The notes under the pieces were generated by a model. The model saw only the letters and a program-made list of their open reading frames with translations. It was not told where the DNA came from and did not search any database. Both the position numbers and the translations under genes were made by a program. This document shows, piece after piece, positions 435 through 63,496 of a stretch of DNA of 64,000 bases. The stretch lies in the NCBI GenBank assembly GCA_051294905.1, contig CM119377.1, positions 28,954,001 through 29,018,000 of the forward strand. The letters are read 5' to 3'. Position 1 is the first letter of the stretch, and every line of letters begins with the position of its first letter. Source of the stretch: Botryllus schlosseri (taxonomy: Eukaryota).

Positions 435-469
435 ATTGGGGTATTTGGTTGTATTAAGGTAAGCATCGG
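435..469 (+). ncRNA. Candidate spliced-leader (SL) RNA gene, 5' part: SL exon + splice donor
   Basis: 435-458 ATTGGGGTATTTGGTTGTATTAAG is 23/24 identical to the 482-505 copy and to the recalled stolidobranch SL. It is followed directly by the canonical donor GTAAGC and not by the element 5' UTR. Confidence 0.75.
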
Positions 470-481
470 AGTATTTGGAGT

Positions 482-505
482 ATTGGAGTATTTGGTTGTA
501 TTAAG
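482..505 (+). other. SL exon copy at the 5' end of E1
   Basis: ATTGGAGTATTTGGTTGTATTAAG, preceded by a stuttered partial copy (470-481). Confidence 0.85.
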
Positions 506-667
506 GTAGCAACCGGCGTAAGTATACTAACGGCTATTTCAGATTCAAGGAGCGTACCGGAGCCGATGAGGCATTAGCTACTTACCGTAAACCTCAGTTT
601 TAACCTAGCGATTTAAGTAGGCTACTTCTTCCTTCCTTCTTTTCGTCAACGTTCGGACTACATTTTC

Positions 668-855
668 GAGTCTCCTTCAGACTCAATCCTTCTACCTCTC
701 CAGGACTCGACTCCTCTTCGTGGGTCGAGTCTTGACTCTCTCTCTTGAGTCAGGACAGGACTCGATGAGTCTTTTCTTTGGAGACTTGACTCTCTCTGGA
801 GTCAAGCCTCCACTTTCTCCTTTCTCTCGCGCCTCTCCCTTGAGACGACGAGAGA
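668..855 (+). repeat. GACTC/GAGTC hairpin array in LINE 5' UTR
   Basis: Five or six inverted GACTC..GAGTC pairs. Homologous arrays lie at about 12340-12560(-), 22395-22600(-), 57370-57540 and 61085-61295. Confidence 0.75.
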
Positions 856-862
856 CTTTAAC

Positions 863-3332: not shown

Positions 3333-4500
3333 ATGGCATACGCAAACGCAGTACAAAACATTCAAGCACAACGCGTAACATATGGACTTAGACCGAGATC
3401 TATAGACATAATAGCGCCATCCGAAACGACCGCCTTTCAAATAATCGAGGTGCTAAGATCACACCCACAGCTCTCTAAACACCCGGAAGACATTCTCTCC
3501 ATGTTTCAAATAGGGAGAAACACCTTTAACTTAACTTTCACTGACGCACAGCCAGCTGAGCAGATGAAACAAAACTTCCTTCAACAAGGCGAGAATGGGA
3601 TTGCCACTGATAATGACACCATTTACTTTGAATATCCCAGACTGCCGACAGTTAAGATCAACGTTAGAGCAATTCCTACGGAAACAGAAGAGGAAGAATT
3701 CAGAAGGAAGTTTATATCTTACAACTGTGGCACAATCAAAGAGACAACCAAAATCTATCATCGGGGTACAAATATACAAAACGGCTATCGACAAATATCG
3801 GTCGAAAACTATCAGCTGGGCAAGATCCCAACCTTTGTATATCTTAGGAAGGCACCTTGCAAGGTGTATCTACCAGATACAGATGAGACGCACCAAAAAT
3901 GCTACAAATGCCTCCAACCAGGGCACGGATCCAGAGAGTGTCCCAATCAGACGGCGTGACTACTGTGCAGTAAGCAAGTAAAAACCAATACAAAATCAGG
4001 TACCGGTGCGAGAAGGAAAATACTTCAACACGAGCCGATGTCTGGCTCGCAATACACAAAAACGGCTGCCGCGCAGCAATCACAATTGGCGTCTCAGGGA
4101 CCCGGACAAGACGAAAATACACAACTAGACATAGAAATCGAAAATAAAACACACGGTGAGAAACCGAATATCGATGAAGGAAGTAGTGAGGTAAACGATA
4201 CTGAAATTGAAGACGTCTTCAGGCAAATAGACTCTATGTGCGAAGAAGAAAGCGTGCAGAACAAAACAATAATCAAAGCTACAGACGCAATTGAGAGCAG
4301 CAACGAAGATGAAGGAGAACTGACTATAGTAATCAGTGAAGAGGAAATAGCAGGCCTGAAATCCCCGAGAAATCGAAAGGAGTGATAGCGCACATGTCAT
4401 GTAAAGTCTTTGAGGAACGCTCCTTTACCCAGGAAGAAGAATCGCCGAACAAACGCAATAATGACCAGAGAAGTCCAACTGGGAGACCGAAACCTAGTAA
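3333..4500 (+). pseudogene. E1 ORF1 (RNA-binding, CCHC zinc knuckle), disrupted after aa 208
   Basis: MAYANA..TYGLRPRS N-terminus and CYKCLQPGHGSREC knuckle. A TGA replaces the Cys of the second knuckle. An acidic low-complexity tail follows in other frames. Confidence 0.85.
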
Positions 4501-4533: not shown

Positions 4534-7500
4534 ATGGATAACAAAATTTTATCCTTGAACGCCAATGGGATGGAAACCCATTGGTTCAAAATTAAAAACC
4601 TACTCAAAAGGGACAAGAATTGGAATATAATATGCATTCAAGAGACCCATAGAGTAGACATAACTAAAATAAGGAAATGGACAAAACAGAACGAATTCTT
4701 ATATTATCCAAACCACATAAATGTCGGGCAAACTTGGATAGATACAGAAGAGGGAAAATAACACTACTATAGAGGGACCAGTAAAATTATCAGAAAGGAA
4801 ATGGGAACTAAATTCGGAATCACCCATCGGATTATAAAGGAAAATAGGGCACAAGCGCTACAATTAACTGATCACGAAACGGAAGAGGACACGACAGTAT
4901 ACAATGTATACGGTCCCAGTGACGTCGGAAGACATCAAACGGATTTTTATAAGGAACTTATAACGGAAATCGAAAAAGACCCAGACAACGCAATAGTCTG
5001 CGGTGACTTTAATATAGTCACCGAGAAAATAGCTTCTAAAAACACCGAGAATTTTAAATTCACACTAGCGGCCAAAGTCTGGAAATCCTTCACGGAAATA
5101 TATAAAATACGAGACGTATGGCGTTGGCGAAACCCAACTAAAAAACTATACACAATAATGAAAGCAAGGCAATCAAGACGGATTGACAGGATATATGTGT
5201 CGCAGAAAAATCTAGCGAGAGTCAGAAGCACGACCTACATACTTAACACTATAAGCAGATCATGTCTTCATGCAAAAAATCCATATTGCCAAACCCTTCA
5301 ACATCCAATGGGGTAACCGGGTCTGGAAGAATGATGCCAGACTCTTCCAGAACGAAGACCTGCACGAAATAATAAAAAGGACCCACCAGACATGCACGGA
5401 AAACAAGCCGTTTTTCAACGATGTGTATGACTGGTGGGACTACCTGAAAAAACAAATGAAAACGCAACTAAAGAACTACAGCTGGTTAAAAAAAGGCCGA
5501 AAACGACAACAAGATAAAAGCTTTGTATGAAAAAAATACACCAAATCCAAAACGACCCAAACCCGCAAGATAGCCCCCTTGAGGCCGTAAAAGAACTAAA
5601 GAAAATAGAGGAGGAAATACGCCACCAATGTAACCTCCATAAGCTTAGGGACCTCGAGGAGGACGAAAAACCTACAAGGTTCGAAAAACTGAAGCAGAGA
5701 AAGGAAAGTAAGATATTGAGCGAGGTAATAAATGAAAGAGGTACCACGATCACCTCTAAAGAGGGAGTATTGGGAGAGGTAGAAGACTTCTACAAAAACC
5801 TCTGGGCCAAGGATGTGAATGCAAATAATGATATACAAATGCAATACCTGGATGAAATCAGACACATCAAAATCACTCCTGAAGAAAGAGAGGGGCTAAA
5901 AACCCAGATAGATCACGATGAAATAAAAGCCGTAATCCAGAAAATGGAATATGGTAAAACACCAGGACCAGACGGCTTATCGAGGGAATTTTACGCCAAT
6001 TACTATTATATCCTAAAGAACGATATACAGGAGGTAATTAACAATGCTTACCTATTCGGTGGAACATGCAAAACTTGGTCAGAAGGCATAACCACAATGG
6101 TCTATAAAAAGGGAAGCCCCCAGGATTTAAAAACTGGAGACCTATCACCCTCTTAAACACTGATTATAAAATCCTCACCGCAATATTGGCAGCAAGACTT
6201 AAACCCATCCTCCCAAACATCATCAATGGAACACAGAAATGTGGGATTCAGGGAAGATGCATAACAGATATCTTGAGAAATACACGAGCCGCGACCCAAT
6301 ACGCGAAAGAACGAGGAAAAGGTCCGACCAAGAGAAAGCCTTTGACAAAGCCTTTGACAAGGTAAACCATAATTATATCTATAAAATCTTGGATATATAC
6401 AGTTTTCCCAACCACTTCACTAAACTGATTTAAAATATCCATCAGGAAGCTAAAAGCAAAATCCTAGTGAATGGAGCCTTAACCCAAGAAATACCTCTTG
6501 AAAGAGGAATTAGGCAGCGGTGTCCGCTTAGCATGACCCTCAATGCCATTTGCAGCGACCCCCTCGCCAGAAGAATAGAAAAAGTCCACACGATCGAAGC
6601 ATTTAGGTTGGGAAAATACAATATGAAGATCCAGCAGTACGCGGACGATCTCACGGGCTACCTGACCAAAGAGGGGATATTGGGAAAATATTCCGAGAAT
6701 TCGATAAATATGAAAGAGCGACGGGGCAGAGGCTAAATGCGGGGAAAACCCAAATTCTTCACATACAGCCGAAAGGAAACTTCCCAACCCAAAAAATGCA
6801 GACCTAAAAAAGCCTAGCATAGAAATACTAAGACAAATATTCGGAATAAATCAGGTGATAGACACCTGGAAAAAGAGAACAATGAAAATCAAGAAAATAG
6901 TCAACGCCTACAGGCACAGAATGGATTGAAAAAAACATCCTAAACTCGTTAGCCGCAAGGCAAATAATATATAATGCGCGAGTAATAGCGATGATAAAGG
7001 AAGTACAGAAAGAAATACAGAAGATGTATTTCTACTTTCTCTGGCAACCAGAAAAAATGGAGGCTATAAAAAGGAAGACCCTAATATCAGAAAAGAGGAG
7101 GGGAGGAATGGAAATGCCGGATGTTTAGGCAAGAGTGAAAAGCCTGTGAATTAGAAAATATCCTAATTCTTAGAGAAATGAAAAAACCAACAGAACTATG
7201 GCACAAATATGCCATTTATGAGACGGGAACCAGAATAAAAGAAATTAACAAGAATCTTTATAGGAATACAGGACCCCACAAATTCCCGACCCCGCCCACC
7301 TGGGTCGAGAATCTGGAGATGAGCAGACGTATAGATCTCGATGAGGAGGAGTGGAGAGAGGCCACCCATAAGTCCTTGATAAGGCAATAAAAAATTTGAA
7401 TGAAATTAGGCCAGACATCAGAACGGAAAAAGGGGAGGAAATTAATTGGAATAAAATAAACCAAACGAAGTATGACACCCAAAAAACTATTACAAATGAA

Positions 7501-7990
7501 GAACTCATCATAAACTATAGAACAGCGCAGAACGGGTATATATTTGGGAACAAAAAAAGAAATCGAAACACAACGCACACAAATTTAGGCAAACCATTGA
7601 TATTAAATTAAACTGTGAATTCTGTAATGAAAGAAACGATGACGTAGAGCATATTCTCACGTTATGTACACATCTTAAAAAATTACGGAACCAAATAGGG
7701 AACATTGGGGAAAAAACTGAATAAAAATTAAATCCTATATAATATCGGAAATTGCAAGCTAGATTGGACCATACTGTCGATCTACAAGAAAGCCGCTATA
7801 AATTTCAAAATAGCACTGGATATCTATAACAGAATGATTACAGATGAAAATATAACAAAAAACATATTGAGAAAAATGAAAAGAAGATTAAATCGAGTAA
7901 CACCAGACAAACAGACGGACAAACTAATCGCAAACATCGCGAAGTTACGATCTGGTCCGCGAAGTTACGATCTGGTCCACTCTAACCTAA
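4534..7990 (+). pseudogene. E1 ORF2: APE endonuclease + reverse transcriptase, multiply frameshifted
   Basis: EN motifs SLNANG, CIQETH, GDFN, IDRIY. RT motifs KTPGPDG, DQEKAFD, GIRQRCPLS, QYADD. Confidence 0.9.
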
Positions 7991-8185
7991 TGAAAAAAAA
8001 TAATAAAACACAATAACCCCTAAAGCTGGGCTCCAAATGAAAGCTTGGCCAACCCAACAAAAAAAGTGACAAAAATCCCTTCCGGGGACGAGGGGGAGGC
8101 CCGACAAAAACGGCCCAACCACTCGCGGCAGGTGGGCAGCGTTTGGAGCACAAATGGAAATATTGCCTCCTTTTGCCGTGATGAC

Positions 8186-8271
8186 ATTGGAGTAGTTGGT
8201 TGTACTAAGGTATGGAAAAACCTGACAGAACCAAAAATTCCATTGTAGTTGTTGGCTGTACTAAAGTACGG
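8186..8271 (+). other. Two SL-like exon+donor copies in the E1 3' UTR (56-bp period)
   Basis: 8186-8209 ATTGGAGTAGTTGGTTGTACTAAG|GTATGG (22/24 to SL); a more degenerate copy at 8242-8265 is followed by GTACGG. Confidence 0.7.
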
Positions 8272-8329
8272 GAAAACCTGACAGAATCAAAGCTAGAGGA
8301 GCTAACAAGCTTAATAGAGTAAAATAAGA

Positions 8330-8470
8330 TGAAACCGTTAAACTAAGTTAAGAAACCGTTTTGAAATTCGAAACCGTTAAACTAAGTTAAGAAACTGCTC
8401 GAAACCGTTAAACTAAGTTAAGAAACTGTTTGGAAATTCTTAAGAAACTGTTTGGAAATTCCTAAGTTAA
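8330..8470 (+). repeat. Short degenerate tandem repeat in the E1 3' UTR
   Basis: Repeated GAAACCGTT(AAACTAAGTTAA) and GAAACTGTTTGGAAATTC units. Confidence 0.6.
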
Positions 8471-8617
8471 AAATAAAAAAAAAACATAAAAATAAACAAA
8501 ATGTGTAGTAAAGACCCCGAGCGGGAGGTAGCCCTATTCTATGAGAGGGCTGCCAAACGCCAGAGGGCTGCCAAACGCCGGCGGATGCCGGGAGCCGTAA
8601 AAAAAATAAGCATCGGC

Positions 8618-8959
8618 TTACTGGACGGTGGCCGGTGCGAAACCCTAGTGGTCCAACCATAATACCTCCAATCACTCTCACACCCAGGAAGAGTATGGCC
8701 TTTGGCCTTCATATTCCGACCCTGGATCTGAGTCTGCTTGACGGGCCAGTATCCCATGCATAGCCATGGTGGCGAGGACAAGCTTGTGGCCCCAGACTCA
8801 AGCCCCTCAAAGACTGGCTATGCAGACTCGCTGCACCTTCATGCTGGGACGGAAAAAATGAAGATGAAATGCGAGTCAACCGCGATGGGAAATCTGTGTC
8901 CTAAGACACAGAGGACCCAATACGGGGGGAGGTTTACTGCGGTTCCTCCGGACAAAAAA
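8618..8959 (+). mobile_element. E2: 5'-truncated LINE 3' fragment (or short non-autonomous element) at the same SL site
   Basis: Ends in ACGGGGGGAGGTTTACTGCGGTTCCTCC (shared with ~49482-49509) plus an A tail. TSD AAGCATCGGC (8608-8617, 8960-8969). Confidence 0.75.
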
Positions 8960-9012
8960 AAGCATCGGCAGGGTGCTGCCAGTTTAGACAGGTGTCTTCC
9001 TAGCTGTTTTTG
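8960..9012 (+). ncRNA. Candidate 3' (intron) part of the interrupted SL RNA gene
   Basis: Continues the target after the TSD: AAGCATCGGCAGGGTGCTGCCAGTTTAGACAGGTGTCTTCCTAGCTGTTTTT. It has hairpin potential and ends in a T-run; no canonical Sm site is present. Confidence 0.45.
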
Positions 9013-9128
9013 CAGATTTAACATTAGCTGTGGTTTTGACGCTGTGGCAAACGTTGTAATTTAAAAAAACTAGACAGGACGTGCTTTTTATAGAAGTAAA
9101 TTTTATTTTGCGGTGCGACGTACTAGAC

Positions 9129-11034
9129 CAGTGGTTCCCAAAGTGGGCGCCAGCGCCCCCCCCCCCCCGGGGGCGTTCGCGAGTGTGGAGGGGGCGCTGA
9201 CCATGAAATAGGCGATTTGGGGGCGCTGGCTAGAAATTTTGGCGGTAGGGGGGCGCTGAGAGCAAATGCGGGCGGTGTAGGTTTAGGAGTCAACGGCTGC
9301 GTATAGTGTAGAAACGATTGATTAATAAAGAGGCTATATTCGCAGCACCGGAAAAGTCCATTGTTACTTGACAATGTTATTCCTGCTCATCAATGGACTA
9401 ATTTTGCAGTCGGCAGCATACCCGAAAAGCGTGGTTCATTTGGTGCTGCAGTGAGAACTACGAAGTATATTTGAGCAGTTATTGCTCACTGCAAGATGTG
9501 ATGGCTTTTCATGAGATTTTATAATCTGTTTCAAACGATCGTGGAATTTCAACAGCGCTGTCACCGTGGCCATCGACACGGCTTTCTGGTTGCGAGAAAT
9601 GACATCACTTTTACTTGATGGTCGTATTCCTCAAAATTTGAAGGTGTAGAATACATCCATTCATATGGTATTGATGAAACCTGATAAACGTGAACATGGT
9701 ACTGTCCGTATTCGCTGACAAGTCAAATAATTTACCAGAATTTCGCGACACGTCAACTGTTCTAATTCTCAAGCTTAGCTATGAGCTACCGGTTCTGCCC
9801 TAACACCTGATTTTGATAGAGAAACATGGATAAATCATCTCACAATAGTAATCTATGATGGTGATTTGGTTCCACGATACGTTCCAATTAGAAATTCCTC
9901 ACCGGATAATCAATCCGTTCTGTGAAGTGTCCAGGCATGAAATGTTTGAGCCACTGATTACGTTGCAGTCAGGGTTACCATACGTCCACTTTTAAGAGGA
10001 TTTATCCTATTTACCTTTTTTTTTAAGTGTCCGCGGAGGAAAGGAAAGGACGTAGTTTATTTTTGTCCTTGATTTTTGCGGCATATACACCGACTCGTGA
10101 TACACATACACACGATCTGTGCATATGCATATACCATTTGTGCATGATGTGCATATGCCGCTGGACAAGGAAGTGCAGATATAGCCTTTACGGCTTTCCA
10201 AATCAAGCAGTAATGCATGAGCGCCAAGCAGGGAAGTAAGGAAGTCATGGATACCAGTTTTACTAAACAGGTCTTTGGTCTGACCCGGCCGGGGATCGAA
10301 GCCACGACCTACCGATCAAGAAGCCGAACGCTTCACCATTACGCTATCTTGCCTAAATGTCCTCTTTCCTGAGAATTGTTCCTCTTCTTTGAAATTTTGT
10401 CTCAAATGTACGTGGAAATTGAACTGAGGTATAGGAAATCAGCACCCGAGTAGGTCTGGCGGGATTTTCGTAACCTGAGCCAGAAAGATAACCTTTTAAT
10501 ATAGTCAACTGGCCACAAACTCTGGAAAATTTACCATTTTTTCCGGATTTTACTCCATCATTGTTAGTCCGAAAATTTTGAAAAAGCGTCATCTTTCCAG
10601 ATTCTCAAAATTTGATAACCCTAATTGTAGTGTAGAACAATTTTGGATTCAACCAAAAGTCCAGTATCTCCAATCAATCGTTCTGGGTACACAATTGAAT
10701 GAAAAATAAACACTCTCACTGAGGTCGGTTTGACTTTCTCGTCGTTGCCATTCCCCGCCCATATTTGATAGAACGTGTTTTCACGGCGACGCGTCCCAGT
10801 TTCTGACTCACAGCAGAAACCGATTTGCCAGTAGGCCTACATGAAGTGAACACTGGAGATTTTAGACCGATCAAACTTGAACCCAATATGACGAGAATGA
10901 TGATATTATTAGCAGTACTAAATGCAGATCAAGTTTCGTTTTATGATTTGGCGTGGTGAGGGGGGTGTCGGTAGGCGGTGGCACTTAATTCGCTGCCAGG
11001 GGGGCGGTAGCTCAAAAAAGTTTGGGAGACACTG
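9129..11034. mobile_element. Non-autonomous hAT (Charlie-like) element
   Basis: TIRs CAGTGGTTCCCAAA / TTTGGGAGACACTG; 8-bp TSD TACTAGAC (9121-9128, 11035-11042). Confidence 0.85.
10170..10353 (-). mobile_element. tRNA-derived SINE fragment inside the hAT MITE
   Basis: Minus strand shows an A-box TAGCGTAATGG and a B-box-like GCTTCGATCCCC, followed by a GTCAGACCAAAGAC..CTTCCCTGCTTGGCGCTCA body typical of invertebrate SINEs. Confidence 0.5.
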
Positions 11035-11465: not shown

Positions 11466-12721
11466 TTTATTTGTATCGACATTTTATAGCAATTCTGCCC
11501 GGTGTGTAATTCTCAATTGATACCTGTCTATATCCGTTAAGGATATTTGTACCTCGGTGATATATCAAGGTGATCTCCTTGATCGTACCACATTGGTAGC
11601 TGGTAAATTTCTTCCGGATTTCGGCTTCCTCCACTTCTGTCGGGACCGCTCTAATATTTATTTTAAACGTGGGAAGTCTGGGTTGTTCGATGTGTATTGT
11701 ACCTTTTTCCGTGACAATCCCGTTGTGTGTTGTGTCCAGAAAGATCCTTTTCAGTCTTTCTATCGGTGCGTCGGCAGGATACGTTAGATTGTAAGTGTTC
11801 CTGCCTAATTGGAACAAAGAAAGGATGTTGTCTTTGTGTTCAGCGAGTGTTCAGTGCGTTCTTATTGCATCTATGACCTCAATCGCTGTTATCTCTGTTG
11901 GTGTGAGCAAGCCCAAGGATCTAGGTCTGAGGCCATAAGTGACCCTTCGATTGTTCATACCTTGCAGCGCGTGTGAGTATGCCATGTCTGTTGTAAGTGT
12001 ATGTTAGTTCCTGTTAGAGCCAGGCAACTGCTGGCGTCTGGTTTCTGTGTTCGTTCCCAAATACTTGTATCTGCGGCGATAGTTCCTGCTGTGCTGTGTA
12101 GTTGTTGGTTTGCTGCTCTGTGCTAGGCAGGCCGCTATCGATTTGTTGTTTCTCGTAGCCTATATACTGCTGCGCTGTTGTAAACTGCGTTGTTTAGCGG
12201 TGCTTTAGAAGCATTGTGAAGGTTTTTAAAAGGCGTTTCTGCGCGCTTTGTTAGAAAGATACTGCAGTTTCTGGTTTCGCTGGCCGATCGTACGAGCACC
12301 GTCCAGACGGTTTCGTAGCGCGTTAGTAATTTAGGTAGGGAAGCCAGACAAGTCTCTCGACGTCTCGAGCGAGACGCGCGAGAGAGGAGAAAGTGGAGAC
12401 TTGACTCTCTAAAGAAAAGACTCAACGAGTCCTGACTCGAGAGAGAGAGTCAAGACTAGAAGAGGTAGAGAAAAGACTCACCAAGACTCGACCCGCGAAG
12501 AGGAGTCAAGTCCTGCGGAGGTAGAGGGTTTGAGTCAAAAGGTGACTCGAAGTGGAAGTTCGGCGACGAAAAGAAGGAAATGGAAGTAAGTATGTTAGCC
12601 TATGTAAGTCAAAAAAGATAACTAGTAATTACGGTTAGGGTAAGACTAGACTACTGTCTCAGCGGCACCGGATCTCCTTGTTGCACCTGAAAAAGCCGTT
12701 AGTATACTCACGCGTTGCTAC
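11466..12721 (-). mobile_element. E4: 5' portion of an E1-family LINE (5' UTR + partial ORF1), 3' part missing
   Basis: Starts GTAGCAACGCGTGAGTAT, homologous to E1 directly after the SL. Has the GACTC hairpin array. ORF1 MAYSHA..TYGLRPRS starts near 11985 and matches E1 ORF1. Confidence 0.85.
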
Positions 12722-12945
12722 TTTTTTTGGGGGGGGCTTTCCGTATTCGCTGCCTTTGTTCGACCCTCTTTTAGATGTAGGGTCGCTTCCAGGTCAGGAT
12801 TTTTATTACACATTATTTATTAACTCAGGATTTTTATTACACATTATTTATTAACTAAGGTGACTGGTTTGAAATTAATATAACTTTTTGTTTTTGATTT
12901 TCATGCCGTTTAGTATGCCCGAGCTCTCAAGGGAGTGCGAAGGCA

Positions 12946-13172
12946 CATACCTTACTGCAACACAACACTCCAATGGCCAGGATGGGTGGGTTTCTCATTT
13001 TGCCTCTTTCGGACAAAGGCTGCCCACAAGAGAGTACGAAGCTACATACCTTACTGCAACACAACACTCCAATGGCCAGGATGGGTGGGTTTCTCATTTT
13101 GCCTCTTTCGGACAAAGGCTGCCCACAAGAGAGTACGAAGCTACATACCTTACCACAACCAAATACTCCAAT
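12946..13172 (-). repeat. 99-bp tandem repeat in the E3 3' UTR, each unit carrying an SL-like exon + GT donor
   Basis: Exon-like copies 13149-13172 (ATTGGAGTATTTGGTTGTGGTAAG, 22/24), 13050-13073 and 12951-12974 (ATTGGAGTGTTGTGTTGCAGTAAG). Each is followed by GTATGT. Confidence 0.8.
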
Positions 13173-13339
13173 AGGTGGAGTGGGTAGGTTTTGCATGTTT
13201 CTGCTTGTGGACCAAAGGCTGTTCACCCGCCGCGAGCAGGTCAGAGGTTTTTGTTCGGCCCCTCCCCTGAAGGGATTTTAGCCATTTTTCTTTCTTAGGT
13301 TGTTGTTGGGTTAAACAAACTTTCATTTGGAACCCAACT

Positions 13340-15420
13340 TGATTAGGGGTTTTAAGATATTTCCTGCAAAATCTTGTTATTTAGGTTTTGTAACTCATTA
13401 CAGAGGAGAGTTTTGTTTGAGAGTCTCTTTTTTGCTGTTGTTGCGATTCTGTTGTATATGTTTTTTGTCAAATTGGCTTTATCGTATTCATTTTCGATGG
13501 TTCGGTCTAATACAAGTCGATGTTTGAGCATTTGGGTTTTATACATTGTGATTATGAGTCTTGATTGTTTTTGGTTGGTTTCAGTAGGTTTTGCGTAAAG
13601 TATGTTGTCTCTCTGTAGTGATGTTTTCTTCCCGTTTTTCCGCAAGAGATTTTCGAGGAGGGCGAGGATTGGATATCTGGCGCCCCGGGACTGAACATTT
13701 TTGTGATGGTCCGATTACGTGCGTCATTGATTCTTTGATCCTGTTGGCCAGGATTTTTGCCATAATTTCATAGTCGCAGTTGGAAAGCGATATAGGACGC
13801 CAGTTATCCAGGCGTTTCATGTCTCCTTTTTTGGGGATTAATATCACATGCGATTCGCCCCAAGTTTCTGGTGTATTTGTGAAGCATAACGCGCTATTGT
13901 AAATTTCTGAGAGACTGTTCTTAAGAGTTTCAAAAAAAGCGGTATAGAATTCTGGCGAAAGGCCATCTGGTCCCGGTGTCGTAGATGTTTTTTGCGAGCG
14001 TAGTGCCGTTTTTATTTCCTCCTCGGTTATTACTTGATCTTGTAGTTCTTGTTGCTCCCGCGGGATTTGTTTTTCAAGGTCTTGAACCATGTTGTCGATG
14101 CTTCCTTCGGGTGCGCTGTGCGCGATGCCCCAGAGGTTATGGTAATAGTTGCGTGCGTGTGTGAGGATGTTATTTTTTCCACGTATTGGCTCTTTGTTGT
14201 TGTCGGTGAGCTCCGTGATACTTTTTTCTTTTTGTTTCATTCTCAGTTGATCGTAGAACTGTTTCGCTGGTTTTTCTTGATCTTCCATACTGTTTTTATA
14301 TTCCGACTCCACTAAGAAGTCTATTTTTGCCTTTTCAAGGGCTTTTAGTTCCTTGATTAGCTTATTTCTCATATCATTTGATATGTTTGGGTTCTGTAGT
14401 GATTTCTTTCTTTGGTTTGTTTCTTGTGTTTCTTTTTGTTTTTTCTCTATGCCGTATTGGATTGACGTTATTCTGATTTTGTTTTTCAAGGCGTCCCACC
14501 ATTGCCCTATGTTTGGATAGAATGCTTTCTCTAGTTCGAAGAGTTTGATCTCGTTGCGTATGATAGCTCTGTATTCCTGGTGTTCAAGGTGGGCTGCGTT
14601 ATTTTTCCAGCTGCCTTTGCCCCACTTTTCCAAGTGTTTTGATTTTAGATGCAGTTCCACATAGTGCGTATGGTCCGAGATTGGATTGACCTTGTAGGCT
14701 ATGTTCTTTACATCACTTACCAGTTCTTTCCCTGTGTAGATTCGGTCTACTCTTCGCTTGTTTTTTGGCGAGTTCGACATGTACACTTTTGTGCTTGGAA
14801 AGTTCCATCGGTATATGGCTATGACGTTGTTAGTTTTTGTGTATTGCTTCCAGACGGTCGATGCTGGAACTTCGGTAAAAGCGTCTGGGCGCTCAACGTC
14901 TATCGCTTTTGTTACGATATTAAAATCGCCTAGGATGATCCGTACGTTCGTGCGTCTTGGTTTTCTAGTTTGCTCACCACATCCTTATAGAAGTCTAGTT
15001 GTTTGTATTTGCCCGATGGTGGACCATACACATTGGTAATTGCTATCGACTCTTCGCGTTCTAGGTGTATAATTAATTGTTGTGCGCGATGTGTCGTGAT
15101 GATCTCGTGCTGTACGTCAGAGTTGTCAGGGAGCCAGCTTTCCTCAACAAGTATTGCTGTTCCCTGATAGTAGTGCTTGGGGTCCTCCTCGTCTTGCGGC
15201 CTCCACTCACCTCCACTCGTCATCCCTATCTAACGCATTAAGGTATATCTTGTATCCCAAGTTTGTTGCCCAAGTCGTGAGTTGGTGCGTTGTGACTTTA
15301 TGGGTTTCTTGTATACATAGAATGTTGAAGTTTTTTGTTTTAACAAATATGTGGAAACTATTCCAGTGTGCTTGTATTCCATTTATATTTATTGTCGCAA
15401 TGGTTGTTGGTGGAACGCCG
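13340..15420 (-). pseudogene. E3 ORF2 (endonuclease and N-terminal RT), deleted in the RT
   Basis: LCIQETH, GDFN, VDRIY, TPGPDG and NWRPISLSN motifs; the 401-aa ORF 14786-13581 then jumps to C-terminal sequence. Confidence 0.85.
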
Positions 15421-18813: not shown

Positions 18814-21721
18814 CCGTAAACCGGGGTAACTTTGGACTTAAGGGTAACTTTGGACAGTAAGCAGTAAAAGATTTAATTGGTTATTGATGGAAATGTGTTG
18901 CTGCTGGAAGTCTAATTCTTTTTCAGGGGGAGAAGGTACCACAAGTAATTTCAAGAAAAGGTGGATTAATATCCCAACTGGATAAACTTGACCCGTCGTT
19001 GATGAATTAACGGCAGGGGTCAATTTCTGCAAAATTGATGGTCACCATACTTCTTACCACCAAACATTGAAGACATGTGAGCCATATATTCAAAAGTTGG
19101 CAGCAGAAGGCTGTTAGCTCTCCAAAGCCACACAACAAAGCTCAGTGGGATCTGCCTTGGATTGATATCTGATATGGTCATGTCCAAAGTTGCTCCCAGG
19201 GGGCAACTTTGGACAGTTTACAATAAGTGTTCAAACTCAGGTATTGGTGTTGCTTTATCTTCATTCAGGTGCATTCTCAACTATTTTCAGATCTTAGCAA
19301 TGGTGCGCAAGTACAAGGCTAGTGTAGGTGCTAGACCTTATCAGAATTATTCCAAAAGTCAATTGGAGAAGGCAATTGATGCATGCAAGGCAGGTTCATC
19401 AATAAGAAGGGCCTGTGAGAAGTATGGAGTAAGGAGAGGAACATTGAACAATAGACTCAGAAGTCTTCATGGACTGCCGCAAGGTCGACCTAGAGCCCTT
19501 TCAGATGTAGAAGAGAGAGCTATTATCAATCACTTGTTGGTCATGAGCAGTTGGGGGTTTCCTTTTGACATGTATGAAGTGCGGAGGTTAGTAAAACTCT
19601 ATCTCGACAAAACCGGTAGAAATCTTGCACTGTTCAAAAACAACCTTCCTGGCGAAGAGTGGCTGAAGGGATTTTTAAGGAGAAATGAAAGAGTAATTGG
19701 ACTGAGAGTTTGCCAAAATATAAAGAGGAACAGGGCTGCCATAAGCAGAGAGATTATAACCAACTATTTTGAAAATTTAACAACAACCTTGAAAGACGTG
19801 CCACCTGAAAATATAATTACGATGAAACAAATTTATCTGATGATCCAGGAAAGAAGAAGTGTGTATTTGAAAGAGGAGTAAAGTATCCTGAAAGAGTGAT
19901 AAACCACTCAAAATCTGCGACAAGTTTGATGTTTGCTGGGACCGCCAGTGGGGTAATCTTGCCACCATATGTTGTATACAAGTCTGAACATTTATGGACA
20001 ACATGGATGCAAGGTGGGCCAAAAGGGACACGTTACAACAGATCAAGAAGTGGGTGGTTTGATGGCTGTTGTTTTGAAGATTGGTTTATGAGTTTAGTAT
20101 TGCCGCATTGCAGAAAATTACCTGGGAAAAAAGTTCTCATTGGTGACAACTTGTCTAGCCACATTTCTGCCGAGGTGATAAAAAAATGTGAAGATAATAA
20201 CATTGCATTTGTTTGTCTACCCCCCAATAGTACACACCTTTGCCAGCCACTTGATGTGTCATACTTCAGATCTCTGAAGCAAAACTGGCGAAAAATTATA
20301 TTGGAGTGGAAATCTGGATCAGGACGTAAATTCACCATACTGCCTAAAGATTGCTTCCCTGTACTTTTAAAAAAATTGGTCAATGCAATGAAAGCCTCTT
20401 CAAAAGCCACATTGCAAAGTGGCTTCAAAAAGACTGGAATTTTCCCATTTCATCCTCAGGAAGTAATAAAAAGGATTCCAGATGACACAGGAGATCAGGG
20501 TGACCTTTTTGAGACATCACAACTGGTTTCTAGCACTGTAATTGACATTCTATCAGCTGCAAGGTTCAATCAGGACACTACCAAGAAGAAGCGGAAATCA
20601 AGAATCAGTGTTACTCCTGGAAAGGGTGTTACTCCAGAAATTTTAGATTCCGATGATCAGCCAGGACCGAGCGGATTGAGAATGACAACGAGATTATCGC
20701 CCCAGGAAGCGGACAGTGCCTTGGTGATTGAATTTAATGATCATAGCGAACAAGAAGATATGATCATGACTGGTGATGATGACGAGAGATCTGCAAGAGA
20801 AGACAAAGAACAGATTAGAAGAGGGGCGTGGGTTTTGACCTCTTTTTCTGCAAGGAAAAAGACCAAGTATTTCATTGGAGAAGTAATTGCGGTTTTGGAT
20901 GGCGAGCCGGAAGATGGTGATCTGATTGTTTCCTTTCTGGAAAGGCGGGGTAAAACTTATGAATTTTGCTGGCCAGCTATTAAAGATGTAGCAAACATCG
21001 ACTTACAACAAGTTGTAAAAACGCTGGGTGTACCCACAGATGTAATTCGGGGTAATTTGCTGCGTCAACAGGGTGCATTAACCTTCTCCGATCACCTTGA
21101 AGACTTTTGGGATAATTTGAGGGATCCACCTGCAGGATAGGCCTAGAATATTTCGTTCCATTTTCAGACACTTTTCTTTGCAACTTTCTGTAATAAATGA
21201 TGGGTTTTGAAACCTGAACTCTTTCAAAAAAGCCTCAATTGGTGGGATAATGATGTGAAGTTTATTATAAAGATTAAAACAGGAATTGGCACAACTGCAA
21301 CGCAACATGAAAAGTCGACCTCTCTCTCCACCATCGCATGTGATGTGCCGAATAATTGTACACTTCCGTCTGCCTAAACTCAAATCAACACGTAAGCAAT
21401 CAGTCAATCTCACGTGTGATACTCAGAAGCCGAGACAACACTAAGCAGGAGCTACACAAAGGCACAGTAATTTAGGCACGAGGAAATAAAGTAAAATTCT
21501 AACCCTGTCCAAAGTTACCCCACATGCAGGGGTAACTTTGGACAGAGGAAAAACAAAAAAAAAAGGTACTTATTTGTGAAAATGAAGTTTTGAGTAAAGC
21601 TAATTCGAATCTTCAATTCATGACACAAAAAGTACAAAAAAAATATTCCCCCTGGAGACTGGTATAAAAAAATTATCAAGCAAAGTTCGAAAAAATTGTC
21701 CAAAGTTACCCCGGTTTACGG
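18814..21721 (+). mobile_element. pogo/Tigger-like DNA transposon
   Basis: Perfect 24-bp TIR CCGTAAACCGGGGTAACTTTGGAC and TA TSD. Subterminal TIR-like repeats occur near 19185-19215 and 21505-21545. Confidence 0.92.
19300..21140 (+). pseudogene. pogo transposase (HTH + CENP-B-like HTH + DDE_1), one frameshift near 19820
   Basis: SIRRACEKYGV HTH, LIGDNLSSH and QPLDV catalytic-region motifs; the frame breaks at the expected NYDETN segment. Confidence 0.85.
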
Positions 21722-36863: not shown

Positions 36864-39843
36864 CAGGCACGTATCCAGAGCGCGAAAAAGGGGGGGGGGT
36901 TTTGAGTGCAATAACCTATTATGACGTCATAATTACGATCACTCGTCTACACGCCAAGGCGAATATTTACGATATATTATAGTTCAATAATTAAAAGAGA
37001 TTTGCGGTGAGTGGGAGATGTACGAATTCGATACAGACAATGCCTGAAATTTCGTGTTTTTACGTTATGATTGAACGAAATTCGTAAATGCTCACATTTA
37101 GTCATGAGCCGACTAACGCCGCCGGTCTCCAAGCGCCTAGTTCCGACCAGAGATGCACGATTTTGTTAGGTTTTGACTATATTATGCGCACAGCCGGTAG
37201 TATCGCAGCGGACGAACAAGCGCGGAATAGTGCGGTAGCATACACGAGGGCGATCGCGATCGCCACAGAGAGGTGTGGAGTGTACAGCTGCACACTAGGG
37301 TTGTCCAAAATTTGGAAAATCTGACAAATCCTCCGTTGTAATGTCTTATTCTATAGATTATTGATAAAAAACGACAATGGGCCTAAAAGAAGCTCACATG
37401 AAGGCCGTTTAGATTTCGTGCAAAGCGTTTGAAAGTAGCTGCCCAAGAATGGGCGTACCACCGACCATGGAACGGCGAGAAGACTAGTAATCACGAAACC
37501 ACGGCTCTTGATTGGCTAATCGGCTATGCTTCAATGACCACGACAGCAGCAGCTTGCTGATTAGGCAATCAAGGAGTCTGCTACCGGCGGCGATTCTGAA
37601 AGCACATTGTATGTAGGTTGACGGATCATGATTTAGGATTGATTCAGGGTGTGTTGAGGTACGAAATACATGATGAACAAACAACAGCAGCTTCACAAAA
37701 ACGTCTAAAGCATGACCGCTTTATTGTGAAGGAAACCGCCGTAGCCTATATGCCTTGTTTTTAACGAGGGAAAGCATAGGCGCTTATGCAAGTGCCGACG
37801 GATTCCTAGTTTCAGAAAGGATATATCATTATTGAATACAAAAATAAAGCTCACCAACGACACTATAATTCGTGTGATCTTATTGGGCTCAGGTTGTAGT
37901 ACATAGTTGAAGTTTTGAATGCTTTAAGGATCGGCTGAATCAGCGGGTTATGCTTGGCACTTATCACATCAAATTATATTCACTTGCAAGTGTTGTCAAA
38001 GTCCTTAATGATAACGCAGAAAAGAGGTGTAAAAGTAAGCACATACTATGCTGGATATGATATGTCAATGATATGGCAAAGTCCTTAATAATCGTGCAGA
38101 AAAGGGGGTAAAGGTAAGCACAGAAAGTGCTGCATAGTGCATAGTATCCAGCATAGTTTATATATCACATCAAGCATAGTCTGTGCTTGCATTTACATCT
38201 CGTTTCTGCGGCATCATTAGGGACTTTGAAAACAGTTACAAGTGAATTCAATTTGCTGTAAACATCTGATAAGTGCCCACTGCCCAGCCTAACCGTCTGA
38301 TTCAGCCGATCCCAAGAGCATTCAAAACTTCAACTATGTACTACAACCTGAGCCCAATAATATCACACAAATTATAGTGTCGTTGCTTAGCTTTATATTT
38401 TGCATTCAATCATGATATATCCTTTTTGAAACTAGGAATCCGTCGGCACTTGCATAAGCGCCTATGCGTTCCCTCGTTGAAAACAAGGCATATAGGCTAC
38501 GGCGGTTTCCTTCACAATAAAGCGGTCATGCTTTAGACGTTATTGTGAAGCAGCTGTTGTTCGTTCATCATGTATTTCGTACCTCAACATACCCTGAATC
38601 AATCCTAAATCATTATCTGTCAACCTACATACAATGCGCTTTCAGAATCGCCGCCGGTAGCAGACTCCTTGATCACCTAATCAGCCAGCTGCTGCTGTCG
38701 TGGTCATTGAAGCATAGCCGATTAGCCAATCAAGAGCCGTGGTTTCGTGATTACCAGTCTTCTCGCCGTTCCATGGTCGGTGGCACGCCCATTCTTCGGC
38801 AGCTACTTTCAAACGCTTTGCACGAAATCTAAACGGCCTTCCTGTGAGTTTCTTTTAGGCCTAGTGTCGTTTTTCATCAATAATCTATAAAATAAGACAT
38901 TACAACGGAGGATTTGTCAGATTTTCCAAATTTTGGACAACCCTACTGCACACGAATGTGTGCATTCGATGGCTTTACTAGCCGCACGGTTGAGCGTGTA
39001 GTACGCGCGAAGATAATTAGCCCTTAATTGCAGGCACGCAAGTCGCTCTATTAATACAGAGTACACACTGGGATAATAACTTGAGCGACAGAGGACCTTG
39101 TCAGCCGATATCACTACGTTAACTTTACTAATAGGCCTACTCAATTCCCCCGTTCAGCGGCAACATAGGCCTGTATTTGGACGACAGCAAGCCACCTAAC
39201 AATCGAGAACGTGGATTGCTAGGCTTGTATTTTGAAATGTGAATGTCAATCGTAGGGCAATTCTCGCCGATAATCGCGAAGACAATGTGGATTTGAGAAC
39301 AGCATTGTCGTACCGGTGCCGCCGTGTCTGCGTCTCGCTGATCAATCAACACGCCGTGCAATTCTTAATTAGGATTTCAAGGCGAGCAGGTGTAGCGAAT
39401 TCGCGGGCGATGTTCATTGCCGACAACTTTGTCTTTGCAATTACGTATCGGCGGTATCGCGTCGGCCAATTAGATTAGATTTTCCTAAAATGCGTCTCTC
39501 GTTTTAGCAAGGCGAGAGAGAAATCGAGGGAAGAAAGTTGTGAACGTCAGCATCTGCCACAGCTGAAATGTAGCTGAACAAGCGCAGAATTCGTACGCAA
39601 TTAGCGAAATATAACGACCTATTTTATCCTTTCGACTAATTCGGCGAATAATTCCAATATTTTGTAGGGGTTTTAGTCCCCTTAAATAACATTAAGACGC
39701 CATATTCGCCTTCTCATACGTAAAAATGAATATGTTGAACTAATAAATTAGCAAATATTAGAGGCTATATTTAACATGAATTTTTAGGATTTTGAAAAGG
39801 GGGGGGTTCCGACCCCCTAAAACCCCCCCTGGATACGCCACTG
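36864..39843. mobile_element. Non-autonomous hAT-like element in E6 ORF2
   Basis: Termini CAGGCACGTATCCAG / CTGGATACGCCACTG; TSD GCAGGAAC (36856-36863, 39844-39851). Confidence 0.85.
37296..38945. mobile_element. Foldback hAT MITE with ~660-bp inverted arms
   Basis: TIR TAGGGTTGTCCAAAATTTGGAAAATCTGAC; TSD CTGCACAC (37288-37295, 38946-38953). Confidence 0.88.
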
Positions 39844-49529: not shown

Positions 49530-51245
49530 GAAACAGTGCACTTCTCTATTCCAATTTCTACTTCAGGATAAGATTTCGATAGACAGTACGGCCCTTGGAC
49601 AACGGGGGAACCGGCTGTCGAGGCCCTAAGTCTTCATAGCTGCAGCTACCCGGCTTGCCGGTACCGTGTCGAAGACTTGGGAAATGAAGCCCCATCTTCC
49701 ACTTGCTGTTGCGTCTCTGCAACCGCGCCATGAACAGATGTTATATATAAAACAAACAACAAACAAGAAAAGAACAAATACGAAGAACATTTACTTTATA
49801 ACTTAAAAAACCTTACTTAAAACACGTAGAACAAGTAATTTAATTTAAATCAAAAACCTTGGTCTAGAACAGTGGTTCCCAAACGGTAGGAAATTCCCCA
49901 CTGGTGGGGAATTCAATGGTTTCTGGTGGGGAATAGACGAATTTGTTCAAAATTATATACAGGACAGTCTACATATTCACGGAGACACATGCGCAATTAC
50001 CGATACCAGTTAGCTGCTCTGGAATGTATGTATCGAAAATTATATTGCGTGTTGTTCACAAAACCTCATTTTTAACTCTCGGTGGCCAATGATGGCGTCA
50101 CAAACGCATCCAGCACGACTAGTTTGATCTGAAATAACGCTTTCGCGAAATTTTGAGCGTTATACTGGTATCGGTTCACAATACGTTTTACGTTGCAGTT
50201 ATAGGCGATTGTCTTGCGTAATGGTGTTGTTGTGGGTCTTGTGTAGTAAAACCAGCAAATAGCTGCTCTGTGATGACAAAAGTGCTGGGTAGTGGGGAAC
50301 AGGACCGTAACTGCCGCTACAATACGTAGAATTTGTATAAATGGAAACTTCGGCGTCGGTCCTTACTGCGCCACGACACACCAAGGCATATGAAGTTATC
50401 GGCCGTGCAAGATGCAACTCTGAGAAGTGTGCCAGAACGATCAGCAGCTAGAAGACCTTGGCCGAGACGAAATGCCCTCGTGGTGACCCAAAACTTTGAT
50501 ATACAATATTAGCGAAATGGCTGGCGCCGAATGTTCCTGTCCTGGCGATCTGAACCCCACAGGACAAATGCCATCCCGCAGGGAAAAATTATTTGCCAGT
50601 AAAGCAATACCAATTTGAAAACGTGTGTGCCTTTTACTTTTGCGCTTTCCACATTTTTTGACATATCAGATATATAGGAAGTCACGAAATAGCATAATTT
50701 AACGAAGTCAATATACCAACGGGTCCGCCCGAAGATATTCAATTCTTATTTAGGAGTCCTACTTTTCCAACACACCTCACTCAGCTCTACCGGTAAATCT
50801 GATTACGTGAGCAGAGAGGGGATAAAAAATTGACAGCAAAATATATGCAATTCCCGATCATATTGACCGATTCAAACACAGATTATATAAATTTTTTCGC
50901 GCCTGGCGCGTTTAGTCGAAATAAGGCTACGCACTAAACAGTAGACCAAAGGCAGTTATAAGTTGCAGGGAAAACGCGTACAGGCTTAGCGTGTCTGAGG
51001 GGGTGCTGGGGGCCCAAGACCGACGTTTTTTATGTTGGGCTGACAAAGTGCTGTTACGGTCCTGGTGGGGAATGGAGGCTCGTAATAAATCTGAAGTGGG
51101 GAATGAAGACAAAAAGGTTGGGAACCACTGGTCTAGAAAAACTAAAAAAAGAAGAACTTCAAAACCCCCAGACCGGAGCAGGCACCTATACCAGACGTAG
51201 AGAGGGCCTGCGATGGTCTGGGTTTCCGGAGAGCCGCATAAAAAA
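49530..51245 (+). mobile_element. E10: 3' UTR remnant of an E1-family LINE (interrupted by a MITE)
   Basis: Terminal stem-loop and GAGCCG+A tail (51178-51245) resemble the E1 and E3 3' ends. Confidence 0.5.
49870..51130. mobile_element. hAT (Charlie-like) MITE
   Basis: TIRs CAGTGGTTCCCAA / TTGGGAACCACTG; TSD GTCTAGAA. Confidence 0.88.
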
Positions 51246-57086: not shown

Positions 57087-60000
57087 GGAGTATTTGGTTC
57101 TGTTAAGGCCGCGCCAGCGTGAGTATTAACTGCTTTTTCAGATTCGAAGACTCGTCGACTGAGCCGCTTCGGCTATTGTAGCTTAGATTTACCGTAAAGA
57201 TTAGATTTAACGTATTGTACCTGTGCCGTAACCAGGTAAGAACTAGTGCCGTAACCAGGTTAGAACCTCCAAGGCTAAATTGTGACTGCTGCTCTGCCGT
57301 ATCTTCGCCGGCAGACAGCAGTCACTTGGGCTACCTCTACTTTACCTCCTTCTACTCTCTTTGCCGTCGACGATCTTCGAGTCTCCTTTAGACTCAACTC
57401 TCTCCAAGTCTTGACTTTCTCTCTCGAGTCAAGTGTTGTCGAGCTCTCCCTCTCCGAGACTTCGCTCTCTCTCTCTCGAGTCTAGTCTTGGTGAGTCTAC
57501 CTTCGCTCTCGCGCCTCTCCCTTGAGACGTCGAGAGACTGCTTTCTTGAACTCGAGTGAGGTTTCTTGAACTCGAGTGAACTCGCCTGACGTCAGCCGTC
57601 GGACGAGTATCGTTCGATTCACAGTGCCGTCTGAGCGCGCAGACTACGCCTATCGAGACACGGAGACAGTAGTATCGATTTCTCGAGCGTCTGGAAACGC
57701 CTTGCTTTGCGCTCTATAGCAAAGCAAAAATAGTATGCAAACGCTCTAACAGGACGCGATAACCAGCGAATAACCTACGGCAACAGGCCACGATCACTGG
57801 ATATAACGACACCACCAAACAGCGAAACAACAGAAGTGATAGATGCCGTTATCACACACCCTAAACTCAAACAATACAGGGAACACATCGCCTCCATCTT
57901 TCGAATAGGCAGAACGACGTACAATATATCCTTCCACGAACATGCACAGGTGGAAATGATACGCGAAGAGTTCCTGGATCAAACAATCACGGGAATAAAC
58001 ATGACAAATGGAACGATGTACGTACAAAAGCCGAGGCCACCTGCGGCACAAATAAACATCAGAGCCGTACCAACGGAGGTGGAAGAACAAGAAGACACAA
58101 AATCGCACAGTACAAATGCGGCACGGTGCAAGAAGTCAAACTAATCTATCACAATGGTACTACCCTCCATAACGGGTACAGACAAGTAACAATAGATGAT
58201 TACGTACCGGGAAGACTTCCGCCCTTCATATACTTGGGACAAGCACCCTGTAAGGTCTACCCACCGAACAATGAGGTAAATGAAACGTGCTTTAAATGCT
58301 TGCAGAGAGGACACACGGCAAGCAGAGAGGACACACGGCAAGCCAATGCCCTAACATGACAGTATACTTCCTATACAAACAAACGGTCACAAATCAGAGG
58401 AAAATACTAAAGGTCGACGAACAAATCACACCAACGGACGTGGAAGAACTACATGAACCTGAAAATAACAACGAAGAACAAAGCCCAACCTCTGCATCCT
58501 TTGATACAGAGGTTGGGCTTTGTTCTTCGTTGTTATTGAGGAGACAGAGATTGAGGAAACAGGAGAGGAAGAAAAAGATGATAATGAAGGAGAAGAAGAA
58601 GAGGACGAAATAGTAGAAGACTACTTTAACCTAGAGCAAAATTCACAAACACCAAGCGAACTTGATACAACGATCATACCAGGTTCACAACACGAAAGCG
58701 AAACTGAAGAACTGCAAATCATCACAAGCGAGGATGAAACCTAAACACAGCAAGATGAAACTCAAGGCAGTAAAAAGCCAAAACACACACTAAATAAAGA
58801 TAGAAATAACCAAACAAAGGTTCGAGGTCAGTCGATTCACGGAAAGCGAATTCTTTAGTGCAGCACAACGCTCACCAAATAAAGGAAATAGTGACGCACG
58901 TAGCCCAACTTTGCCAACGACAAGTAAAAACAGACGAATGCTGGCGAAGCCGAACCCGGGCGAAGAGAAACAGAAAGCCAAAATAGTACCTTGCCCCTTC
59001 CCGCAATCAAAAATGGCTCTTGATATTATCTCCTTGAACATAAATGGAATTAATGCTCACTTGTACAAGCTTGAATGCTTATTGAAAAACAATAAAAGAT
59101 GTAATATCCTCCACAAATAGGCCCAACAGAACAACTGGATATATATCCCGGACCATATTGACGACGGACAATACTGGATAGATAGAATAGGAAACAAAAA
59201 ACATTACTACCAAGGAACCCCGATATTCGTGTAAAAAGAATTAGAGAAAAACCATACCATAGAGAACACCGACATACCATAGAGAACACCACCATGTTAG
59301 AAGATAGGAAACTAACAAAGAGGATGACCAGTCAAAGCACATATACAACGTATATGGACCGGCTGATGTGGGGAGAAACCAAACAGATGTGTTCAAAATA
59401 CTAACGCAGCGCATCGGAAACCATCCAGACAGCGCCATAATCTGCGGCGATTTCAATATAGTAACGAACCGTCTTGACTCGAAAAACAACCGAACGTTCC
59501 AACTTACACCAGCAGCGAAAATCTGGAAACTCTTCACAGAAATCTGGAAACTCTTCACAGAAACCCATAAAATAAGAGACATATGGAGATGGAGAAATCC
59601 AAACAAAAAACTATACTCAGTAATAAAAACTTTCAACTCGAGAAGAGTTGATAGAAGATCCTTATAAGAGAAATATCTTAGCCATGCGCAAACATGCAAA
59701 AAGTTAAAGAACACCTGCAACTCTTCGCACGCTAAAAAAGAAAGGCGGAAATAAACCAAGTAAGAAAACTACGAGAGGCGGAAATAAACAAAGAAAGAAA
59801 ACTACGTGATGAAATAACACGAATACAAAGAAACAGCAACAACGTCTTCGACGCAACGGACAAAATCAAAGAGCTTAAGCAGATGGAGGAAGAGAACATC
59901 ATCCACCAATGCCGGCTCAGTAAGGTAAAGGATATTGAAGAAGGCGAATAGCCGACCAAATACACTAACCAAGAACTGAAACAAAGAAAGGAAAGTAAAA

Positions 60001-60881: not shown

Positions 60882-61369
60882 GGAGTATTTGGTTGTATCA
60901 AGGTCGCACCAGCGTAAGTATAACAAACGGCTTGTTACAGATGCACGGAGCGAACCGGAGCCGCTGGGGCAATAGCTAAACGTACCTAGATACCTACAGT
61001 AATAGCTAGTATTTTTCTTGTGGTAACCTAGACTAGAAAACTTCCTTCCATTTCTTCCTTTTCGTCGCCGGGTATTCACACTCACCTTCGAGTCTCCTTC
61101 AGACTCGTCCCTTCTCCCTCCTGAGACCTGACTCGTCTTCGTGAGTCAGGTCTTAAAGGAGTTTTTTCTACCTCTCCGAGACTTGACTCGTCTTCGTGAG
61201 TCGATTCTCGTTTAAGTATTTTTCTTTAGAGACTTGACTCTCTCTCGAGTCAAGTCTCTACTTTTCTCCTCTCTCGCTTGAGACGCAGAGAGACTGCCTG
61301 CTTATCTTTAGCCTAATTACCTATACGTCTTCGCCGCTGTCTAGACGGCGATCATACGATAGTCTAGCG
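60882..61369 (+). mobile_element. E12: 5' UTR of an E1-family LINE with SL head
   Basis: GGAGTATTTGGTTGTATCAAG (20/21 to SL), GTAAGT donor motif and GACTC array; interrupted by a hAT element. Confidence 0.85.
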
Positions 61370-61481
61370 CAGTGGTCCCCAACGTGGGCGATATCGCCCC
61401 CCAGGGGGCGATTTGGCGGTCTAGGGGGCGAAAATAGCGAAGGGGGCGATGGCGCGTTAAAACGGCTATATTGCAGGCCAG
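61370..61481. mobile_element. Left end of a hAT MITE
   Basis: CAGTGGTCCCCAAC after the GTCTAGCG target; the right end is not in the window. Confidence 0.65.
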
Positions 61482-63404: not shown

Positions 63405-63496
63405 AAGCTTTCAATTAAGATTCATTGCTTCTGCTTGCAGCACCGTGATGCAAATATTTTTTTGTGCTATTCGCATTTACCTGCGCATTATTGATG

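Follow-up and report, generated by a model that had tools for sequence, protein, structure and literature searches.

A spliced-leader-like exon and donor within the 3′ UTR of spliced-leader-headed LINEs in Botryllus schlosseri, a candidate copy of the insertion site

Non-LTR elements tied to spliced leader (SL) sequences are known from trypanosomatids (SLACS, CZAR and CRE) and nematodes (NeSL-1), and the elements described here share this tie. The endonuclease of SLACS, CZAR, CRE and NeSL-1 is restriction-like and their insertions lie within the SL exon, whereas the present elements have an AP-type endonuclease and join at the boundary between exon and splice donor. The RNA of SLACS starts at SL position +1, like the SL heads of the present elements, and we know of no internal SL copy in the 3′ UTRs of SLACS, CZAR, CRE or NeSL-1. 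The target-specific LINEs of the Tx1 clade are a second point of comparison, since they likewise combine an AP-type endonuclease (APE) with a reverse transcriptase and sit on small-RNA genes; Mutsu, for example, targets 5S genes. Keno targets U2 genes, and SL exons are also listed as a known LINE target (PMC4640811). Our literature search returned neither an SL-targeting member of the Tx1 clade, nor a target copy in a 3′ UTR, nor a published description of an SL copy in the 3′ UTR of a LINE.

Target-derived sequence is also present on the RNA of the LINEs R2Ol and R1Bm, where it aids insertion by annealing. In these elements, co-transcription places the homology at the ends of the RNA; the B. 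schlosseri sequence, in contrast, is an internal and heritable stretch situated 390 nt before the tail, and it is the upstream flank that it matches. Target-homologous RNA flanks raise R2Ol insertion efficiency, from 12% to 96–98% with 3′ read-through 28S sequence, and 105 bp of upstream 28S were added to favour full-length insertion (PMC6530143). Moreover, small nuclear RNAs are fused to LINEs by template switching in U6/L1-type chimeric retrocopies and in snRNA-headed SINEs, but such fusions lie at the 5′ end of a copy, whereas the sequence reported here is a fixed internal part of the UTR of a LINE lineage. Site-specific LINEs serve as models for how retroelements find their address, and they are being made into gene-insertion tools.

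We analysed a window of 64,000 nt of B. schlosseri DNA (contig CM119377.1), to which all positions refer. Element E1 is a decayed LINE on the plus strand. The upstream flank of its insertion consists of a target SL exon copy (23/24 identical to the exon copy at 482–505) with the first 11 intron bases, GTAAGCATCGG (435–469, plus strand). By direct reading, a 12-nt filler of partial SL pieces follows at 470–481 on the same strand (AGTATTTGG and then AGT), which apparently shows template slippage or switching among SL copies during formation of the 5′ junction. The head of E1 (482–856, plus strand) starts with its own full SL exon (482–505), after which come a GT and the beginning of the 5′ leader. 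The 5′ UTR is then interrupted at 857–2986 by a foldback insertion with 640-nt inverted arms, foreign to the element proper; a second foldback-type insertion, with 551-nt arms, lies at 37293–38948, and in both cases the arms are 95% complementary and the host is a LINE copy. E1 continues on the plus strand with ORF1, which encodes a CCHC zinc knuckle (3333–3959), and with the remnants of ORF2 (4534–8016), covering an AP-type endonuclease, a reverse transcriptase and a C-terminal Cys/His motif in a frame with many stops and frameshifts (stop codon at 8014–8016). The 3′ UTR (8017–8598, plus strand) leads to an A tail (8599–8606), with which the repeated target bases TAAGCATCGGC make up positions 8599–8617 of the plus strand. 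A short, 5′-truncated LINE of another lineage, E2, occupies the same site (8620–8957, within a mapped interval of 8620–8969 on the plus strand), and past its A tail come GCATCGGC and the remainder of the interrupted sequence. This map of E1 was colinear in tblastn, and its A tail and the repetition of the target bases come from direct reading of the sequence. Pfam domains zf-CCHC, Exo_endo_phos and RVT_1 were found on E1 or its relatives, as in APE-type LINEs; membership of E1 and of a second element, E3, in the Tx1 clade is putative.

Within the 3′ UTR of E1, an SL-like 30-mer, ATTGGAGTAGTTGGTTGTACTAAGGTATGG, occurs at 8186–8215 on the plus strand, starting 169 nt past the ORF2 stop. This is its single occurrence in the window, and none of 100 dinucleotide shuffles contained a match. 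The SL exon copy at 482–505 was taken as the reference leader for scoring. It equals the published tunicate SL consensus minus the first G, so the reference is a real leader and not a guess; the published chordate (tunicate) SL is 25 nt long (PMC3795323, Table 1). Scored in this way, the exon of this first cassette (cassette a, 8186–8209) is 22/24 identical to the leader, and GTATGG comes next. A decayed tandem duplicate, cassette b, lies at 8242–8271 on the plus strand; its exon (8242–8265) agrees at 18 of 24 positions and is followed by GTACGG, a weaker donor (AAA/GTACGG versus AAG/GTATGG in cassette a, the slash marking the exon/donor boundary). For searches allowing up to 8 mismatches in 26 bases, the shuffles give an expectation of ~0.4 hits per window. 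Given the A tail at 8599–8606, cassette a ends 390 nt upstream of the tail. An earlier note on this DNA had described an SL-like cassette (22/24, then GTATGG), a degenerate second copy 56 bp downstream, and a location well inside the element, ~400 nt before the A tail, and each of these descriptions is borne out.

The same block recurs in E3, which lies on the minus strand and runs from a 5′ end at 22733 to a tail at about 12721. The ORF2 pieces of E1 and E3 are only 26–44% identical, and their 3′ UTRs (12721–13355, minus strand, in E3) align despite this divergence. The top-scoring 30-nt window of the UTR alignment is the SL block with GTATG (26/30); three other blocks just upstream reach 25, 25 and 24/30 and one near the tail 22/30, and the conserved blocks fall at 8029–8088, 8124–8153, 8186–8214 and 8500–8529 in E1. 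Since the SL block is no better conserved than the adjacent UTR blocks, selection for likeness to the SL is not set apart from general constraint on the UTR. In E3, SL-like copies start at 13172 (22/24), 13073 and 12974 (19/24 each) on the minus strand, with GTATGT after each, and the first of them lies about 180 nt past the ORF2 stop. This shared UTR position in a deeply diverged element upholds the claim that the cassette is part of the element and no chance match. Moreover, the first copies of both elements have GTATG after the exon, versus GTAAGC at the SL copy at 435, which argues for inheritance of the block from one ancestral UTR, as we read it, and not for two captures. Elements with this type of UTR and an intact 3′ end number just two in the window, E1 and E3, and the block is present in each; the comparison is one of n = 2 carriers, both dead copies. 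Taken together, the cassette appears to be a conserved 3′ UTR block in a single group of SL-headed LINEs of Tx1/L1 type, represented here by E1 and E3.

How the additional copies arose can be followed in both elements. Tandem Repeats Finder resolved 8185–8291 into a 56-bp unit present 1.9 times (86% matches) and reported, among overlapping rows, further tandem duplications of 20, 31, 22 and 18 bp in the 3′ UTR of E1. Cassettes a and b of E1 have two departures from the SL in common, G10 and C20, indicating that b was copied from a within the E1 lineage; cassette b is thus a by-product of a duplication-prone UTR. The two further SL-like copies of E3 lie within a 99-bp array and form a mosaic, copy b combining the exon of copy c with the spacer of copy a, a pattern that one offset 99-bp duplication explains. 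After removal of the exon changes shared within each element, private changes relative to the SL numbered 0 in E1a, 1 in E3a, 4 in E1b and 4 in E3c (1/9 in the first copies; p about 0.02 in a hand-calculated sign test on this small sample). This suggests that one copy was held SL-like while extra copies were free to drift, and we infer that the first copy alone is maintained, the later ones being by-products of tandem duplications. The E3 array (12928–13235, minus strand) also contains AGCCTTTGT, near the Ciona Sm motif and 27 nt past the donors of its SL-like exons, and an older, diverged unit of the array reaches upstream into the conserved UTR block. The order of exon and Sm-like motif in E3 is a product of the tandem layout only.

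On the minus strand at 22736–22944, adjoining the 5′ leader of E3, we found a full U6 snRNA copy (Rfam, 97 bits), a tRNA-like stretch that received no ARAGORN call, a shortened SL, ATTGGTTGTATTAAG, and a GT. We interpret this arrangement as the outcome of template switching, a chimera that heads a LINE copy at its 5′ end. Together with the filler at 470–481, this U6/tRNA-like/SL chimera shows template switching at SL sequences by the reverse transcriptase of the element. It also bears on the main rival to a functional reading of the cassette, namely that the block is a functionless relic, an SL 5′ end brought into the UTR by some template-switch event, for example in an old chimera between a short SL-headed retroposon and a LINE, and persisting only because the UTR module has diverged little. 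Such an origin would agree with a homology that begins at the first SL base and ends after GTA, as for a copied RNA 5′ end, with the occurrence of template switching in the family, with a conservation (26/30) about equal to that of other UTR blocks, and with the existence of related lineages that manage without the block. It accounts less well for the retention of 22/24 positions in two lineages whose proteins are only 26–44% identical, and for first copies that stay SL-like in E1 and E3 while their duplicates decay. We regard a functionless relic as somewhat unlikely, although it is the strongest of the competing explanations; the readings as a splicing site, a landing pad or a true donor are less likely.

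The presence of an exon and a GT donor in cassette a (22/24, then GTATGG) raises the question of an SL RNA gene. The earlier note had suggested that the cassettes may compensate for a disrupted SL gene or provide alternative leaders; taken further, the idea is that they are working SL donors or mini SL genes which supply a variant leader (...GTAGTTGGTTGTACTAAG) and make up for SL genes hit by insertions. The exon is indeed near-perfect and the donor usable, and the E3 array places AGCCUUUGU, near the Ciona motif (PMC7986045), 27 nt past two donors. However, homology to the SL is confined to the exon and GTA. The intron that adjoins the SL copy at 435 showed no significant similarity to the UTRs of E1 and E3 in local alignments; against dinucleotide shuffles, p ranged from about 0.1 to 0.98 with the region and the scoring scheme used. 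By direct reading, no canonical Sm motif of the type known from Ciona SL RNA (AGCUUUGG; PMC7986045), nor anything Sm-like, lies 3′ of either E1 donor, including the 32 nt after cassette a and the sequence after cassette b. Rfam gave no match to the cassette at E-values up to 5 apart from a chance lncRNA, although tunicate SL models may be absent from the database. Nor did visual comparison reveal any resemblance between the upstream side of the cassette and the sequence preceding the SL copies at 435 or in L004, one of the LINE loci fetched from outside the window. Since likeness to the SL stops at GTA, with neither intron similarity, Sm site nor Rfam match, the cassette is not an SL RNA gene, and the same results leave compensation for a disrupted gene without support. 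Supply of an alternative leader fares no better, given the lack of intron similarity to 435 and the decay of the duplicate copy. The cassette moreover sits within a Pol II LINE transcript and its duplicates are decaying, so that we consider working donors very improbable, the least probable of the explanations weighed here. For annotation, this is a warning that hits to an SL exon and donor within repeats are not SL genes.

Several other relationships of the cassette were considered and rejected. A permuted or complete SL gene failed in the same intron alignments, and a GGCAGG..GTTTGG resemblance to the intron, seen by eye, was not significant. The cassette and its downstream sequence are not a duplicate of the 5′ leader: an nhmmer profile built from five leaders (post-exon part) hit only those five and no UTR at E-values up to 10, and a short match between E3c and a leader did not generalise. 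Nor is there a conserved hairpin, as cassette a of E1 folds well (z = -2.97) but cassette b of E1 and the E3 units do not.

The distribution of the block is narrow. SL-like sequence above chance is missing from the 3′ UTRs of nine other LINEs, of which four lie in the window and five in fetched contigs. Among these block-less UTRs are those of L004 and L009, both of which start with SL and GT, and that of L011, an E1-like element (62% identity over a C-terminal piece of ORF2) which by eye has some distal tail motifs in common with E1. The block is thus specific to one UTR module. As L004 and L009 are SL-headed without it, the block is not needed for SL targeting and does not determine which target is chosen; the readings of the earlier note as a decoy target or a homology guide may still apply. 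Outside the window, a word search with ORF1 returned two short Logan contigs, and a search with a spurious ORF spanning the cassette had no match. The best hit of a representative search was 37% identical over 1104 aa, and only two short fragments reached 39–43%. The fetched loci L003, L004 and L007–L011 represent other lineages, with the block absent, and L005 is a locus of an unrelated eukaryote. L009 (1–5488, Logan SRR25569769) has the SL from base 4, a GT, ORF1, an intact ORF2 of 1164 aa and a 26-A tail, with a short AT-rich UTR that contains no internal SL copy; it has the appearance of a complete SL-headed element belonging to a different LINE lineage.

The A-tail junctions read A8/TAAGCATCGGC in E1, A8/GCATCGGC in E2 and A7/GTAGCAAC in E3, all 0–4 nt from AAG/GT, so that one target position was used in n = 3 independent insertions within a single window. 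With three tails so close to AAG/GT, the cassette corresponds to the insertion site of the family, copied as far as the nick. Indeed, the cassette appears to copy exactly the SL exon and the first donor bases, the sequence immediately upstream of the A-tail joint AAG/GTA. Terminal target homology of the R2/R1 type is not what the cassette offers, as it is internal and far from the tail, whereas the SL copy in the 5′ head (482–505) fits a 5′-terminal version of such homology.

Our preferred, still tentative reading, to which we give a probability of roughly 0.4, is that the cassette is a retained copy of the insertion site that provides homology to the upstream target flank. Under this reading, the internal SL copy would place an anti-SL stretch within the first about 400 nt of the first-strand cDNA. 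Early in target-primed reverse transcription, this anti-SL cDNA could pair with the SL exon beside or just upstream of the nick; alternatively, the element protein that reads the target site might bind the block in the RNA. Either pairing or protein binding would tether the upstream target end and hold the two target ends together. The effect of target-homologous RNA flanks in R2Ol is a precedent. As a side effect, pairing could yield very short copies headed by SL and GT, that is, SINE-like derivatives. Against this stand the position of the block, 390 nt from the tail and away from the RNA ends where annealing is known to act, and the elements L004, L009 and L011, which lack it and suggest that it is dispensable for SL targeting. 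If the reading is true, template and target would be coupled in a new way, by an internal, heritable stretch of the template RNA that copies the upstream flank, and this could explain the origin of SL-headed short retroposons.

A different use of the block would be as a second transcription or processing unit, carried by the element and starting at the SL exon in the UTR. In one version, the SL sequence would serve as an internal start signal, and the last ~420 nt of the LINE would form a SINE-like RNA with an SL head that depends on the same enzyme for its mobility; in the other, trans use of the donor would give host mRNAs a variant leader. This we hold to be quite improbable, though not to the degree of the working donors above.

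The donor bases could also matter as a binding site. An exon with a donor might recruit U1 or SL-type splicing machinery and remain unspliced, for example in the control of polyadenylation, nuclear retention or localisation. In keeping with this, the donor AAG/GTATG is kept in 4/5 of the copies of E1 and E3, and the 5′ heads also consist of SL and GT, followed by a branch-point-like TACTAAC and a YAG; cassette b of E1, in contrast, has no AG before its GT. A splicing-factor site appears unlikely, slightly less so than a second unit. With respect to the 5′ heads, all five 5′ leaders contain, about 12 nt past the SL donor, a very small intron-like motif composed of GTAAGTA, TACTAAC (which fits the branch-point consensus perfectly) or a close variant of it, a run of T and CAG (519–543; 22722–22698, minus strand; 12722–12698, minus strand; 57119–57141; 60915–60941). 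The leader may use this motif as an acceptor in cis- or trans-splicing.

The tail of E3 is joined exactly at AAG/GTAGC of the SL head of a further element, E4, indicating that element-borne copies of SL and GT do serve as targets. The 3′ UTR block could then be one more AAG/GT target, a landing pad on which later copies stack within elements and spare host genes. Yet none of the five 3′ UTR copies in the window is occupied (0/5), and being a target may be a consequence and not a function. A promoterless pad would moreover be a dead end for the incoming copy, so that selection on the carrier would be weak. We judge the landing pad to be about as unlikely as the splicing-factor site, and keep the retained insertion-site copy as the preferred reading.

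Other repeats share the window with these elements. E3 contains, between ORF1 and the 5′ leader, an ORF on the plus strand (19896–21140) with a DDE_1 transposase domain of the pogo/Tigger type. A short module, CAGTGGTTCCCAA.. followed by GGGGGCG repeats, adjoins LINE ends at 9120–9230, 49865–49930 and 61365–61440 and could represent a small non-autonomous element. At 63417–63956 lies a tandem array whose period is 79 bp. Finally, a BEL/Pao-type LTR retroelement extends over 28155–34479, with DUF1759 and Peptidase_A17 domains in its ORFs; its two 227-nt terminal repeats are 100% identical, which suggests a recent insertion.
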